The position numbers were made by a program, and so were the translations under genes. A stretch of DNA of 63,532 bases, the filler included, from Hyphochytrium catenoides (Eukaryota; Protista; Hyphochytriomycota): assembly GCA_900088475.1 (NCBI GenBank). It is 10 parts of 10 records of this genome, joined end to end, with 100 filler letters (N's around TTAATTAATTAA, not from the genome) between each part and the next. Parts side by side here need not be neighbours in the genome. Positions count along the whole stretch, not along the records: positions 57,729 to 62,288 come from FLMG01001172.1; 9 more parts are not named here. One strand, given 5' to 3'. Below the pieces are notes generated by a model, which saw nothing but the letters and a program-made list of their open reading frames with translations, did not search any database and was not told the DNA's origin. Below, one piece after another: positions 56,338 through 62,553 of the stretch (positions within the stretch are counted from its first letter, which is position 1; each line of letters starts with the position of its first letter).

Positions 56338-57885
56338 GTGGGCATGGTCTGTGTGATACAGAACAAGCTGGCAGCTGACCTCCCGAGCCAACGACCCTCC
56401 CAACGCAAACATTTAGTAAAAACCATTTCTTTCACTTGAAACCTTTCAACCTTGAGGTTGTTTTTAGGTATAGAAATCATTTGAATGTTACCATTGACTG
56501 AAATCAATCGTATGTTTCAGAATTTGGCTCCTTCCTCTCGTTTTGGATGCTACTCTCTATGGTACGAGCCAGAGGAGACTGGCTTCAATACATAATTGCC
56601 CTTCTACAGTTCATGAGAGACAGGACTCCTTGCTTTACTGTTATTTTTCGAACACATGTGTGGGCCTTGTAGTCATCTTAATTCCTCATAATGCTAAAGC
56701 TTTATCCATGATAAACAAGACGCCACCACTACGCCACTGCCAGCGTACTGTACATGTACGTGTAATTTACCTGTATTTCTATGGGTTCTACCATTCTGAA
56801 TAGACCTATAGGGTGGGTGGGTTAGGAAGCAGTAAAACGTATACTCTATACTAATGCTATTGCCACTACACCTCCATATATTACATTAAACTGTGAAGCC
56901 CAAAGGGTGATTAAGCAAAGAATTGTTGGCTGCACCTCTGTCTCGTATACATTTAGGTTTATCCTATAGATTTATCCATCTCTCCGGAGAGAGAGAAGAT
57001 AGGAAGAGAGACAGGGACGAAAGGGGGAGGCACAGAGAGAGAGACAGAGAAAGAGAGAGAGGGGGAGAGAGAGAAAGAGAGAGAGAGAGAAAGAGAAAGA
57101 GAGAGAGAGAAAGAGAGAGAGAGTGATATAGAGAGAGAGAAAGAGTGAGAGAGACTTCAAGAGAGTACACTGAGAGAAAGAGAGAAAAAGAGAAAGAGAG
57201 AGAGACAGAGAGAAAGGGAGAGAGGGAGAGAGGGAGAGAGAGAGAGAGAGGGAGAGAGAGAGNNNNNNNNNNNNNNNNNNNNNNNNNNNNNNNNAGAGAG
57301 AGAGAGAGAGAGAGAGAGAGAGTTGTTCGTTTTTCATAGCAAAAGATCCACCACAAGAATCAGATGTGGAGCATACATCGCCTGGTTCTGAAGAGACACA
57401 AGAGAGAGAAAAGAGAGAGAGAAACGCTTGTCACGTACTCTCTCTCTTCAAAACAGAATTTCCACAGATCGGCAAAAAGAAAGGAGAGAAAACGAAGGGA
57501 GAAAGTGCTGAAGCGGGAGGACAAGAGAGGAGAGACAGGCTCCTACTAGACAACACCGATAAAGAGGAGAGAGAGGAGGAGAGAGAGAGCCAAAGAGAGA
57601 GAGATACACACACAGAGAGAGAGAGAGANNNNNNNNNNNNNNNNNNNNNNNNNNNNNNNNNNNNNNNNNNNNTTAATTAATTAANNNNNNNNNNNNNNNN
57701 NNNNNNNNNNNNNNNNNNNNNNNNNNNNCGCACATTCCTGTTTTCAGACCCTTGACCTAAAGGCCAAGGGCACTACGTAACCCTATAACAAGGGATAGAA
57801 AAGAAGAAGCGAAAAAAGGAAAGGAGTACAAGTCCACAAGTAGGCAAAAATAATATGTGAAGTAGTCTACCGCGAGTTACAAGTA

Positions 57886-57913
57886 CAGTAGACCCCCTGT
57901 AAATTTGCGTACC
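57886..57913 (+). repeat. Left TIR CAGTAGACCCCCTGTAAATTTGCGTACC
   Basis: Exact reverse complement of 62177-62204. Confidence 0.97.
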
Positions 57914-58277
57914 AGTCATTTTGCGTATCCACTTTTTTGCGCACAAAATCTTGGGACACAACTTTTTCGTACTGCTTCTGAATAATGACGTATTTATTCC
58001 TAAATCAGCACTAATGTTAACAAGGGGCTGATCTTTGCTCTGTTTATCTTAGAAGGGTTTCTATCTCCTCCTTCCACTTTTTCCTTCTTCAAGTTCCTTC
58101 TTCTTCGTTCCCACTCCCAGCGCCGCCGCCGCCGCGCCGCGCTTCTTCTCATTCTCCTACTTCTTCTTGCTGGTTGTGCTTGCTGGCTCCTCCTCGCTCC
58201 TCCATGCCTCCTCCTCTTTCTCGTTCTCGCTCGCTTCTCTTTATAGCGAGCCAAGCCTGCTGAAGAAAGAACAACCG

Positions 58278-61200
58278 ATGACTCTTCCAATTGCGTCCTT
58301 TCCTCCTCCTCATCAGTCCGGCAGTGGTGGTGATGGTGGTGGCGCTGCTGGGCTGTTGAGGGAAAGAGAACCCCTGCGTATGTTGGGGGAGCTGACGACA
58401 TTGCTCTCTGAGAAGGCGCTACGCAAAAGCAGCGATACCCATGATGGTCGTTGTCACATTCTTCAACCTCTCATAGAGTCTATAACAGCTCTCCTGAAGC
58501 CTTCTGGTTTTAAGGTCTACAATCCTCCGGGTGATGGGCACTGTCTCCTTCGATGTTACCTCTGCGCAGTCTACGGAGAGGCTGCGGCTTCAAACGACAG
58601 TCGTGTGGCCTCACTTAGGAGGCGCATTGCAGGAGCTTTCACAGAACTTGGCGAGCAATGCCTGGACTATGACGAGTTACTTCTTCTCTGGCTAGAGAAC
58701 TGTGACGACCGTGATGAGCGCTGGGCAGCCTCCTGTGAGGAAAACCCTAATCAAGAGAGACTCCTTCTAAAATGGCGTGCCTTTTGCAGAGATTACGGGG
58801 ACTTTAGAAAGGCAAAGTACTCTGGAGAGACAGTTCTGTCCGTCATTCGCTCCCAGATCCATCCAGAGACTGACAATCTCATATTCATTATTGTCTCCGT
58901 CTCAGAGAGGAATGGATGGCACGTGCTGGAGAAGAAATTAGCAGTTCGCGGTACAGATAAGCTGTCCGATGATCACAATGCAGTCTTTCTGATCTACCTG
59001 ACGTCTGCGCAACACTTTTGTCTTGTGACGAGGCAGCCAGAACATCCATTAGCAGATAATCGTCGGCAGCAGCAGCAGCAGCCGTTACTACCCAAAGAGG
59101 TATCATCACAAGAACCTGAAGTCACGAAGTTGCCAACAGGGCCGGCAGCAGAGGGCCAGACAAGAGGAGAAGGTGGTCGTGCTACGCTCAAACAAAAGGC
59201 CGGAGGGAAGATGCCGGTTACATCGGCCTCGTCCGGAAAAGGAAAGCAACGACAGAAGGCCAGCCGCAAAAGCAAAACTCACCTCACTATATCCGCTAAG
59301 CTTGAGGTTCTGAAAGCTCGAGCTGCTGGCGCAACTATCGCTGCTGTCTCTAAGCGATTTGGGGTATCCAAACGAACGGTGGTGTACTTGGTAACGCAAA
59401 AGAACGGGATTGAACAGAAAAACCTCAATTCAAGGCTGCGTGGAACCAAGAACTTGAAAGCTAATGTCAAATTCCCAGTCCTGGAGACAGCAGTGCAGGC
59501 CTTCGTGGAACTTATGCGCCGAGAGCGTTTCCCTGTCACTGCTAGGTTGATCCAGTCCCAAGCCCTGGCAATAGCGGCAGACCTTGGCATTGCTGAGTAT
59601 GATTTCAAGGCAAGTGATAACTGGGCAGCACGGTTCGTTAAAAGGATGGGATTGACCTCTAAGACCTTGCACGGCGAAGCCGGCTCAGCACGCGGCCTGG
59701 ATGTCTCAGATGCGATCCGCAAGCTAAGGAAGGAGCTCGACGGTTACTCTGTAGAGCACATCTACAATATGGATGAGACTGGTCTTTTCTATCGTCTCCT
59801 TCCGAAGAAATCGTACATCTGCATGGATGAGGACAAGCGGAGTGTTCGGGGCACAAAGATGATGAAGGCGAAGGATAGGATCTCCCTATACGTCTGTACC
59901 AATGCTGCCGGCACCCACAAGCTGCCTATGGGTGTGATTGGCAAATCTGCCAACCCTCGCATTTTGGGAAAAGGGGCTACTAGGACAACCCTCTTGAAAG
60001 ACCTTAGGTTAAACTACTTTAGCCAAAGTAACGCCTGGTCTGACACCAAGACTATGCTGGACTGGTTACGCGAGGTCTTTCTGCCCCAGGCTAGACGGCA
60101 TGCTAAAGGAGCTAAAATTGCTCTTATCATGGATAATTGCGGTCCTCATCTGACAAAGAAGCGTGGGGAGGATGGCGAGGAAGTGCCAGTACTACCTGAC
60201 CTCGAGGATTGTAAGTTCCTGTTTCTGCCTCCAAATGTGACTTCCATTCACCAGCCAATGGACCAAGGGGTCATTGCTCTTACTAAGAGAGCATACCGCT
60301 ATAGGCTGCTGATTGTATGGGGAAAGGTTTTTCGGTACCGCCTTCAGCTCCAGAACACATCAAAGCAGATGAAGAGAGGCACAAAGGGCATCCAGGAGGG
60401 ATCTCCTCCGCACCTATTGGATGCCATCACGATACTCTCTGATGTCTGGAGGAACAGTCTGACGAAGGAAGCAATTATACGTTGCTGGTTGAAGTCCGAC
60501 ATTTTACCTGCTGCACACCAGAAGGCACTGACCAAAGAAGTAGGGGATGACTCTGCTCGTCGCGGAGGCTCAAGGAGAAGAGTTATCCCGGATCTCTTGA
60601 GTGATCAACAGACTGAGCAGGATGCAGACGACTTTGACTCCTCATCAGTTCCAACTGCAACATCAGGGTCTCCCGCCAAGTCGCAAGGACATCTCCCCGA
60701 TACCGTGCTGGATATGGTGAAAGATATCAGTACCGCGCTCGGTGATATGGCGAAGGCGGAGCTACTGGCAGCCACAGAGAAGAAGAAGAGCTCTAACAGC
60801 GCTGCCGCTGCTACGCTGAATAAAAAACCAGAAGTGGAGCACCGCGACGAGGTGGGAGAGTGTCTACTTCAAATGGCCCAGCTAAGCGTCAAAGACCAGG
60901 AGGAGACTGTGTTACGCTGGCTAAACCTGGAGGCGGATCCGGAGATCAGCGAAGCCATTGTAAATGACGGCCTTGAGGAAATCAAAGCCAGAGCTATCAA
61001 AGAGGTAAATCAGCATGGTGCAGCAGCAGCTTCCGGGGGCAACACGAGCAGATCTATCGAGGACTTTGATGGCTGTGTCAGTGAGAGTAAACAGGCTAGT
61101 GATAATGATGAGGACACCAGCGGCGGAGAGGAAAAAGTCACATCCGCTACACCTAAAGAGCAAGGAAACCCCCCGCCGTCGAAGAAGCGACAGCCAATGC

Positions 61201-61397
61201 CCAGTTCGGAGCAGTTCTTAGCCGTCTTCGAGACGCTAGAAGGCTACTTGGTTAGTTGTGGTGTGAGTGACCAGCTCATCAAAGACACCCATAAGTTGCG
61301 CTATTCAATCCTCAGTGAGCGAGACGCGATCGAGAAGGAGGAGGAAGAGGCAAAGAAAGTCCAGGTCCGCATCACTTCTTTCTTCAGCAGGCCATGA
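58278..61397 (+). CDS. OTU-like cysteine protease / pogo transposase fusion (OTU - CENP-B_N HTH - HTH_Tnp_Tc5 - DDE_1 - PIP box); first ATG at 58278, frame open from 58167
   Basis: OTU-like: PGDGHCLLR...FLIYLTSAQHFCLV. HTH: LTISAKLEVL..VSKRFGVSKRTV. Tc5 HTH: KFPVLETAV..PVTARLIQSQA..FKASDNWAARFVKR. DDD triad: IYNMDETGLFYR, LIMDN, FLPPNVTSIHQPMDQGVI. C-terminal QVRITSFF. Confidence 0.93.
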   Translation: MTLPIASFPPPHQSGSGGDGGGAAGLLREREPLRMLGELTTLLSEKALRKSSDTHDGRCHILQPLIESITALLKPSGFKVYNPPGDGHCLLRCYLCAVYGEAAASNDSRVASLRRRIAGAFTELGEQCLDYDELLLLWLENCDDRDERWAASCEENPNQERLLLKWRAFCRDYGDFRKAKYSGETVLSVIRSQIHPETDNLIFIIVSVSERNGWHVLEKKLAVRGTDKLSDDHNAVFLIYLTSAQHFCLVTRQPEHPLADNRRQQQQQPLLPKEVSSQEPEVTKLPTGPAAEGQTRGEGGRATLKQKAGGKMPVTSASSGKGKQRQKASRKSKTHLTISAKLEVLKARAAGATIAAVSKRFGVSKRTVVYLVTQKNGIEQKNLNSRLRGTKNLKANVKFPVLETAVQAFVELMRRERFPVTARLIQSQALAIAADLGIAEYDFKASDNWAARFVKRMGLTSKTLHGEAGSARGLDVSDAIRKLRKELDGYSVEHIYNMDETGLFYRLLPKKSYICMDEDKRSVRGTKMMKAKDRISLYVCTNAAGTHKLPMGVIGKSANPRILGKGATRTTLLKDLRLNYFSQSNAWSDTKTMLDWLREVFLPQARRHAKGAKIALIMDNCGPHLTKKRGEDGEEVPVLPDLEDCKFLFLPPNVTSIHQPMDQGVIALTKRAYRYRLLIVWGKVFRYRLQLQNTSKQMKRGTKGIQEGSPPHLLDAITILSDVWRNSLTKEAIIRCWLKSDILPAAHQKALTKEVGDDSARRGGSRRRVIPDLLSDQQTEQDADDFDSSSVPTATSGSPAKSQGHLPDTVLDMVKDISTALGDMAKAELLAATEKKKSSNSAAAATLNKKPEVEHRDEVGECLLQMAQLSVKDQEETVLRWLNLEADPEISEAIVNDGLEEIKARAIKEVNQHGAAAASGGNTSRSIEDFDGCVSESKQASDNDEDTSGGEEKVTSATPKEQGNPPPSKKRQPMPSSEQFLAVFETLEGYLVSCGVSDQLIKDTHKLRYSILSERDAIEKEEEEAKKVQVRITSFFSRP

Positions 61398-62088
61398 GGT
61401 ATATGGTCGTCACTCGTCCCCATTCAATAGCAAACAGTTAGTCCAAGCTAGTCCACACAACTAATGATGATAACGCTCAAAATAAGTGATCATAGTAACT
61501 GCTCCTGCTCAACAATGATAGGATGATGGGGCGTAGAAGAAGTAGTAACAAACACAGTTCAAGGGAAGAGAGAGAATGGGTTCTATTCAACCCTAAGATC
61601 TATTTTTAGATCTAGAAGAGCAGAATGAAGAAGAACTCATTGCTCGTCACTCAACAGGAAGAAGAAGAAGAAGAAGGGAACAGCGATGTGTAGAAGAGTT
61701 GTTGAGAGAGGAGCAGCAGGAAGCAAGGAGCAAGGGCGAGAAGAGGATATTTATCGACGAACATTTGTTTTCTTCCATCATCCTCCTGTTCTTCTTCTTC
61801 TTCTCATCTTCATCATCTGCTTCTTCTTCGTTCCCTCCTCTATCTTCTTCTCGTCAATCGTAGCTTTCTTCTGTCCTCGCTTGTCAATGATCATCATCAT
61901 CATCATCAGTTAGTAGCAGCAGCAGCAGCTTATGATGCAAGCAGAAGATAGTAGTAGAAGATGATGACGCCAGGACGACGACAGGAGGGAGAAACAAAGA
62001 GTGAAGAAGAGGTGAAGATAGATGGTCGGTGGTGGGGTGGTCAAGGACCGGCGGGAGGAGAGAAGACGGCTTTCTGTGCTGGACAAGT

Positions 62089-62129
62089 TAAGCCATAGTT
62101 AATATTAGAGGGATATTAACTATGGCTTA
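62089..62129. repeat. Perfect 17-bp inverted repeat with a 7-nt spacer, in the transposon's right subterminal region
   Basis: TAAGCCATAGTTAATAT-tagaggg-ATATTAACTATGGCTTA. Confidence 0.9.
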
Positions 62130-62176
62130 TCTATTTGCGTCACCCATTGTTTTGCGTGTTGGTGGCATGGGACACA

Positions 62177-62204
62177 GGTACGCAAATTTACAGGGGGTCT
62201 ACTG
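62177..62204 (-). repeat. Right TIR GGTACGCAAATTTACAGGGGGTCTACTG
   Basis: Exact reverse complement of 57886-57913; followed by TA. Confidence 0.97.
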
Positions 62205-62553
62205 TACTCCTTTTTATTATATATTTTTTAATTTCGTGAATGGCTTTTATTGATTTATTGCTACTACTAACGCTACTAACAGACTAATNNNNNNNNNNNN
62301 NNNNNNNNNNNNNNNNNNNNNNNNNNNNNNNNTTAATTAATTAANNNNNNNNNNNNNNNNNNNNNNNNNNNNNNNNNNNNNNNNNNNNTTCTCGGATGAC
62401 CTGGGCTACCTACTCTTTTCCTTCTCGTCATCCCCCCTTGCGCCGTCAGAGAGAGGAAATACTACGGAAAAATTTTCTTGCGCCAAGCACATCGAGGATG
62501 CAGTACTCTTGGGTGCACCAGGTTAGATTTGTGAAGAGGCTACACAGCTGAAC

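Follow-up and report, generated by a model that had tools for sequence, protein, structure and literature searches.

A stretch of 63,532 nucleotides (nt) of Hyphochytrium catenoides DNA (assembly GCA_900088475.1, filler included), referred to here as the window, contains at positions 57886-62204 what is apparently one complete, structurally intact, single-copy cut-and-paste DNA transposon of the pogo superfamily, judging from its sequence. The element encodes a transposase that ends in a canonical PCNA-interacting (PIP) box and starts with a putative OTU-like cysteine-protease domain. We consider it likely that this is an intact pogo transposon with an ancestral C-terminal PIP box, and with a probable OTU-fold addition that is independent of the PIP box.

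According to its translation and Pfam matches, the transposase (hereafter the query) is encoded on the plus strand by a single uninterrupted open reading frame (ORF) of 1039 residues from the first ATG (58278-61397), and this frame is open from position 58167. From N- to C-terminus, the ORF contains the OTU-like domain, a linker, a helix-turn-helix (HTH) motif, an HTH_Tc5 domain, the DDE_1 catalytic domain, an acidic tail and the PIP box.

The PIP box in the transposase and its relatives

The codons cag gtc cgc atc act tct ttc ttc at positions 61362-61385 (plus strand) encode the sequence Q-V-R-I-T-S-F-F. They are followed by agc agg cca tga, encoding S-R-P and a stop codon that occupies positions 61395-61397. 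The initial annotation had described an exact PIP consensus three residues ahead of the stop, and both the translation and a motif scan bear this out: QVRITSFF fits Q-x-x-[LIM]-x-x-[FY]-[FY] exactly, and neither the strict nor a relaxed pattern matches anywhere else in the protein. The motif corresponds to residues 1029-1036 of the protein when numbered from the first ATG, and to residues 1066-1073 of the 1076-codon open frame when numbered from the TTG at 58167. It is preceded by KK-V, which places lysines at positions -3 and -2, and an arginine is present at position +2. The tail in which it is embedded (amino acids (aa) 780-1039) contains 19% D+E and 41% S, T, P, G, A or Q.

A chance match was considered and rejected. 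Based on the composition of the protein itself, 0.0145 PIP matches are expected in the whole protein and 1.8e-4 in its last 20 residues. When the protein was shuffled 20,000 times, a match appeared anywhere in the sequence in 1.5% of the cases, and never in the last 20 residues. The expectation of 1.8e-4, together with the conservation of the motif across the family (see below), argues that QVRITSFF is not a chance occurrence. The PIP degrons of CRL4-Cdt2 substrates contain a T-D pair at motif positions 5-6 and a basic residue at +4. The possibility that QVRITSFF is such a degron was rejected as well, because its positions 5-6 are T-S and the protein stops at +3; in the absence of the T-D pair and the +4 basic residue it looks like a binder and not like a destruction signal.

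The region encoding the PIP box also contains one arm of a perfect inverted repeat of 17 nt that flanks the ORF (arms at 58255-58271 and 61376-61392). One arm ends 7 nt 5' of the first ATG; the other spans the S-F-F-S-R-P codons, leaving 3 nt between it and the stop codon. No perfect inverted repeat inside the element is longer, and repeats of at least 17 nt were found in none of 200 Markov-shuffled and in 4 of 200 block-shuffled controls. The repeat could pair the 5' leader of the mRNA with the 3' end of the coding region, and because of this overlap the final PIP codons may face a second constraint.

An exhaustive HMMER search identified 9232 relatives of the query, of which the best 150 were inspected for domains and tails; unless stated otherwise, the results on relatives given below refer to these 150. 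All of them match the transposase core (query aa 320-770) with identities of at most 45%, the best relative reaching 45% over the core. Most originate from metagenomes; of those with a named source, the closest comes from the diatom Skeletonema dohrnii. A word-index search with the whole protein, which was swamped by low-complexity words, returned one bat Tigger1 only. A strict PIP motif is present within the last 30 residues of 21 of the 150 relatives, and only two matches were found elsewhere in those sequences, which corresponds to a 225-fold positional enrichment at the C-terminus (Fisher p 1e-26). A relaxed motif is present in 40 of the 150, and in 29 of the 79 proteins that look complete; as in the query, K or R usually stands before it. 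The initial annotation had stated that pogo-family transposases can carry C-terminal PIP boxes, which agrees with the literature (PMC5371812) and with the frequency and enrichment of the strict motif.

We then used 66 transposase cores to construct a tree, which was rooted on a Tigger1-derived protein and from which other Tc1/mariner superfamilies were left out. The query falls within a clade of 19 members (SH-aLRT 99). PIP-bearing members are present in basal as well as derived clades, and in all clades of the tree. In one clade, formed by relatives P0101, P0140, P0061 and P0094, the tails are PIP-like without the glutamine (SPSIKTFL, SPTITRYF, TTLHEFF and PSLEKYFF), and many relatives have degenerate tails such as QLSMKDFV or QLMLTEVW. 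This distribution across the aligned sequences indicates that the C-terminal PIP box is an ancestral trait of this pogo family and not peculiar to the query.

Three other observations on individual relatives are worth mentioning. The N-terminal extension of P0140 has a weak Pfam match to 'Usp-48' (E 0.002, below the cut-off). The predicted protein P0052 (988 aa) is made up of two transposase units in tandem, with two HTH_Tc5 and two DDE_1 stretches, which probably reflects an insertion, nested or tandem, or else gene calls fused into one. Finally, no terminal inverted repeats (TIRs) were found around P0004 (L002).

The OTU-like domain and its relation to the PIP box

The putative OTU-like cysteine-protease domain comprises approximately aa 60-262 (58455-59063, plus strand), and its assignment is based on motifs and on weak Pfam, Protein Data Bank (PDB) and language-model matches. 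It contains a Cys box, GDGHCLLRC (aa 85-93, 58530-58556), with Cys89; a Trp motif, DERWAASCEE (aa 146-155, 58713-58742); and a His box, SAQHFCLV (aa 243-250, 59004-59027), with His246, all encoded on the plus strand. These motifs stand in the order typical of OTU proteases and conform to the pattern D-G-x-C-[LF] ... H-[FY], and in P0101 a Cys box and a His box fall at aligned positions. The sole match in a Pfam scan of the N-terminal region was OTU (PF02338, E 0.24). Likewise, the sole PDB sequence match obtained with phmmer was the OTU domain of a nairovirus L protein (6dx3, E 0.09), whose 84 aligned residues span the region from the Cys box to the Trp motif. When language-model features were compared, PF02338 was assigned to 78 of the 100 nearest named Atlas clusters (score 0.92, 173-178 shared features), and Nucleocytoviricota clusters were among the matches. 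The region is also coding-like: the 310 codons upstream of Met312 are free of stops and in frame with the transposase, and their codon-position GC content resembles that of the transposase part. The N-terminal domain therefore probably has an OTU fold, and the available sequences indicate that these ~200 aa are a lineage-specific addition. The OTU domain that the initial annotation had placed in the same polypeptide thus stands as far as OTU-like Cys and His motifs in one uninterrupted frame are concerned, but it remains below every curated threshold.

An internal in-frame ATG (Met312, 59211-59213, plus strand) is located just upstream of the position where the alignments with relatives start. 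Where the match to a relative starts at its own first residues, the alignment begins at query aa 329-334; for instance, residue 2 of P0002 corresponds to query residue 334, and residue 5 of P0003 to query residue 331. Because Met312 lies about 20 residues upstream of this point, an isoform lacking the OTU-like domain is possible. The Met312 region may thus have retained an ancestral start codon, and two isoforms may be produced.

The initial annotation had suggested that the OTU domain and the PIP box might act as a functional module, for which co-conservation of the two across homologous elements was proposed as a check and their independent occurrence as the refuting outcome. When this check was run, an OTU-like N-terminus was detected in only one relative besides the query, P0101; the other relatives that have room for an N-terminal domain showed no OTU-like domain. 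P0101 is a protein of 879 aa encoded on a 3.3-kb metagenome scaffold of the European Nucleotide Archive (L001:86-2725), and no TIRs were found on this short contig. Its N-terminus contains a Cys box (DGNCFFR) and a His box (NHF), matches Peptidase_C65 (E 0.002), and has weak PDB matches to a bunyavirus L-protein fragment and to OTUD3. Its tail is acidic and ends in the PIP-like sequence mentioned above (SPSIKTFL). The clade to which P0101 belongs (SH-aLRT 100) is separate from that of the query. The cores of the two proteins are 34% identical and alignment is significant in the core only, the OTU parts giving a BLASTP E value of 0.39; in addition, phmmer searches of the 150 relatives with either N-terminal domain found only the domain itself. 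Conversely, 21 of the 150 relatives by the strict pattern and 40 by the relaxed one have a PIP tail but no recognisable OTU domain, and they occur in every clade. OTU and PIP therefore occur independently across relatives, the outcome that had been named as refuting the proposal, and a co-evolved module is not supported. The OTU-like domains appear to have been added here and there, in particular lineages, to a family whose transposases already ended in a PIP tail, and on this sequence evidence the domain did not arrive as a companion to the PIP box. Further OTU fusions may be present beyond the best 150 of the 9232 relatives. If both parts work, the OTU domain would be carried to PCNA, and yet a dedicated role of the domain in editing PCNA or chromatin ubiquitin seems very unlikely.

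We infer the following mechanism from the precedent of Drosophila pogo and from PIP-box biochemistry. The presumably disordered acidic tail would offer Q-x-x-I-x-x-F-F, with its basic flanks, to the hydrophobic pocket of host PCNA, and this docking would tie the transposase to sites of replication or gap-repair synthesis. At its N-terminus the protein probably carries a cysteine protease with an OTU fold, in which the catalytic residues Cys89 and His246 have been retained. This domain is comparable to other transposon-encoded proteases. It would most likely act on ubiquitin or a ubiquitin-like modifier for the benefit of the element itself, for instance to keep the transposase from being degraded, or it may serve to process the fusion protein.

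Several observations weigh against this explanation. The score obtained with PF02338 is 12.3 bits, whereas the gathering threshold is 23.3. AlphaFold2 predictions of aa 31-296 had low pLDDT values, both for the region alone (38.7) and when a two-row alignment with P0101 was used (37.3). No match was obtained in a word-index search with region 45-300 or with a two-sequence OTU alignment, and scans of metagenome loci with the OTU-like domains of the query and of P0101 did not reveal relatives. With respect to the PIP box, about 110 of the 150 relatives lack a recognisable tail motif. Many of these are incomplete gene calls, which lowers the apparent PIP frequency, and some look complete; moreover, the functional relevance of pogo PIP boxes is described as still unclear (PMC5371812). 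Finally, there were no RNA runs for the source organism among the sequencing runs found.

The explanation must also be weighed against readings that assign other roles to the two ends of the protein. The one closest to the initial annotation is that they act jointly: the PIP box would dock on PCNA at forks or repair patches, where the OTU domain would de-ubiquitinate PCNA or nearby histones and thereby steer the repair of excision or insertion sites. Both parts are indeed present in one uninterrupted frame with the catalytic Cys and His retained, and P0101, the only other OTU-like fusion found, also has a PIP-like tail. Moreover, the independent acquisitions suggested by the tree would mean that fusions with deubiquitinase (DUB)-type domains arose twice in a PIP-bearing family, and the authors of PMC2836005 speculate that repair factors are targets of the OTU and Ulp1 domains of transposons. 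However, the tail of P0101 is uninformative because PIP tails are widespread in the family without OTU, OTU and PIP do not co-vary, the two OTU-like domains are not detectably related beyond the Cys box, and a start at Met312 could give a transposase without OTU that still bears the PIP box. We therefore regard joint action as quite unlikely. Also very unlikely is a broader version, according to which pogo transposases with a PIP box acquired N-terminal DUB-type domains at least two times independently (the query and P0101) because a PCNA-tethered OTU benefits the element. It might, for instance, remove ubiquitin from PCNA or histones at the gap left by excision and so select the route of repair. 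If true, the query would be a transposon-encoded manipulator of DNA-damage tolerance.

An OTU-like domain that works independently of PCNA, either as a DUB that protects the transposase or host factors from the proteasome or as a cis-acting protease that frees the transposase from its N-terminal extension, is a more plausible reading, though still rather unlikely. Viral OTU and papain-like proteases cleave within polyproteins, the closest weak matches of the domain are viral (nairovirus L protein and Nucleocytoviricota clusters), and between the domain and the start of the relatives' transposases lies a long linker of low complexity (aa 263-330). Protection from degradation has, in addition, been proposed for Helitron deubiquitinases (PMC9741609). 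On the other hand, the linker has no recognisable ubiquitin-like Gly-Gly cleavage site, and the domain assignment is itself below threshold. This last point, together with AlphaFold confidence below 40, would fit the unlikely alternative that the N-terminal 310 residues are not a functional OTU at all, and are instead a degenerate or unrelated captured sequence, or an untranslated 5' leader with translation starting at Met312, ~20 residues ahead of where relatives that match from their first residues begin to align. No sequence relatives of the region were found among 5.8 or 1.84 billion proteins, nor among metagenome contigs. The distance between Cys and His, 157 residues, is long for an OTU. 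Against this alternative stand the absence of stop codons upstream of Met312 and the transposase-like codon-position GC, the correct order of the three OTU signature motifs, and the agreement of the sole Pfam match, the sole PDB match and 78 of the 100 named language-model matches on one superfamily. As to the other end of the protein, PIP motifs overlap with RIR and MIP motifs. The match might be an inherited relic, or be meant for another PIP-like reader that recognizes F-F motifs of the Rev1 RIR or Mlh1 MIP type, and the degenerate tails as well as the versions without glutamine in the P0101 clade suggest relaxed constraint in places, in line with the doubt about functional relevance expressed in PMC5371812. 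We nevertheless consider this improbable, since the element is intact, the motif is perfectly canonical and has basic flanks, and the enrichment of such motifs at the C-terminus, which extends over deep clades, speaks for purifying selection acting there.

The transposase core and the transposon

That the protein is a pogo-family transposase, as the initial annotation had it, is supported by Pfam matches above the cut-offs, whose coordinates were converted to ATG numbering by a shift of 37. The DNA-binding region (59286-59663, plus strand) consists of HTH_23 (aa 337-369; PF13384, E 1.6e-5, 25.0 bits for a cut-off of 24.6) and a Tc5/CENP-B-type HTH (aa 399-462; PF03221, HTH_Tnp_Tc5, E 3e-12, 46.7 bits for a cut-off of 22.2). 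The catalytic core (59763-60488, plus strand) was delimited by Pfam and alignment; it contains DDE_1 (aa 532-737; PF03184, E 5e-32, 111 bits, above the cut-off) and a DDD triad formed by D499 (NMDETG), D619 (LIMDNCG) and D662 (QPMDQG), with DD42D spacing. These motifs align with NADQSG, LDNC and QPADMG of P0101. The low-complexity linker contains a basic stretch, KGKQRQKASRKSK (59238-59276, plus strand), in a region with 26% K+R (aa 300-345), which is a candidate nuclear localisation signal. In the acidic tail, phmmer detected the motif W-x-x-[LV]-E-x-D-P-[ED]-[IV]-x-E-A-[IV] (aa 862-922, 60861-61043, plus strand), which reads W-LNLEADPEISEAIVNDGLEEI in the query and W-AEVEDDPDVIEAVIDDEIEAI in P0101. 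A search with the query tail retrieved P0138, P0006, P0003 and others at about 1e-4, so this motif is weakly common to many relatives; it did not match any Pfam family. An exact look-up did not find an identical record for the 1039-aa product.

The element is bordered by TIRs of 31 nt, the left one at 57886-57916 (plus strand), beginning with CAGTAGACCCCC, and the right one at 62174-62204 (minus strand). A TA target-site duplication abuts the left TIR externally (57884-57885) and its partner adjoins the right TIR (62205-62206). The termini thus read TA|CAGTAGACCCCC... at 57886 and ...GGGGGTCTACTG|TA at 62204, and are CAGT-type inverted repeats. The TIRs proper agree at 30 of 31 positions, and the 35-nt arms that include TA and two flanking bases are 97% complementary. 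A motif count revealed the subterminal motif TTTGCGTA in two direct copies (57904 and 57920; 57904-57927, plus strand). The pattern TTTGCGTR has five matches in the window where 0.16 are expected; four are located at the element ends (57904, 57920, 62151 and 62179) and the fifth is internal (58420, minus strand). The subterminal TTTGCGTA copies are predicted to be a transposase binding site, which we consider likely.

Two Logan assemblies, of runs filed in 2011 and 2017 within one study, each contain the whole element as a single unitig of 4323 nt that ends at 57884 and 62206 and shows zero differences; either run may be the source of the window sequence, and hence the independent support that they provide is weak. 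Because the unitig is identical in both assemblies, an assembly chimera was rejected and the open frame is not an error of a single assembly. The depth of this unitig equals that of the unique junction contig, and at 80% likeness the assemblies contained no diverged copies beyond short stray pieces, so the element looks single-copy. The flanks (57729-57880 and 62137-62288) reach a k-mer depth of up to ~11,000, compared with ~150 for the element, which implies that the transposon sits within highly repeated DNA. Approximately 780 nt separate the stop codon from the right TIR, and opposed (GAA)n / (TTC)n tracts at 61650-61860 in this region form several imperfect inverted repeats. An air metagenome contains three short contigs (151-190 nt) whose match to the element is 99-100% (58625-58814, 59402-59552 and 59620-59770), which indicates that the organism or the element was present in that air sample.

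Comparison with known transposons and proteases

A PIP box in a pogo transposase is not new. As reported in PMC5371812, which cites Warbrick 1998 and 2000, a two-hybrid screen identified the transposase of Drosophila pogo as a protein that interacts with PCNA, and the pogo PIP box is described there as conserved in Tigger and Lemi1. What our survey adds to this feature, described in 1998, is a measure of its C-terminal retention across deep branches. Drosophila pogo, human Tigger and Arabidopsis Lemi1 (IS630-Tc1-mariner) share with the query the TA duplication, CAGT-type TIRs, a CENP-B/Tc5 HTH, a DDE_1 domain with DDD and the C-terminal PIP box. The DD29-42D range of Lemi takes in the DD42D of the query, and Lemi elements are also present in stramenopiles (PMC7386202), the likeness of the query to them being one of spacing alone. 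Compared with pogo, Tigger and Lemi1, the query has an additional N-terminal extension of ~310 aa with the OTU-like domain, and the protein is about twice the usual length. The words OTU and PCNA are absent from two large pogo-wide surveys, one of them PMC7386202.

Among proteases, the best though weak matches of the query N-terminus are viral OTU proteases (nairovirus 6dx3 and giant-virus clusters, E 0.09 to 0.24). In contrast to these, the query has a long insertion between Trp and His, and there is no sign of shared descent beyond the superfamily level.

Other transposons also encode protease domains: OTU is present in Ginger1 and Helitron/Helentron, Ulp1 in Mutator-like elements and Ginger1, and VTD in Helentrons (PMC2836005, PMC9741609). 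It has been suggested that transposon-encoded deubiquitinases protect proteins needed for transposition, and transposon OTU domains have never been assayed (PMC9741609). The intact single-copy element described here, with its near-perfect ends and open frame of 1039 codons, is a practical candidate for testing transposon-borne DUB domains, and the PIP tail and Met312 offer clean separation-of-function mutants. Like the protease domains of Ginger1, Helitron and Mutator elements, that of the query is a papain-like DUB-type domain that is fused in frame to a transposition enzyme, has a patchy distribution and keeps its catalytic residues. However, the OTU of Ginger1 is C-terminal and that of the query is N-terminal, the enzyme of the query is a pogo DDD transposase, and, unlike the transposon OTUs of Ginger1 and Helitron, its domain is too divergent for the Pfam OTU threshold. 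The closest counterpart in organization is P0101, which likewise combines an N-terminal OTU-like domain, a pogo core and an acidic tail with a PIP-like end. The two differ in that they belong to different well-supported clades, share 34% identity in the core only, have OTU parts that are not significantly alike, and have tails of which that of P0101 lacks the glutamine. Judging from the pogo-wide surveys mentioned above, a pogo transposase with an N-terminal OTU-like domain, found twice, is what appears to be new.

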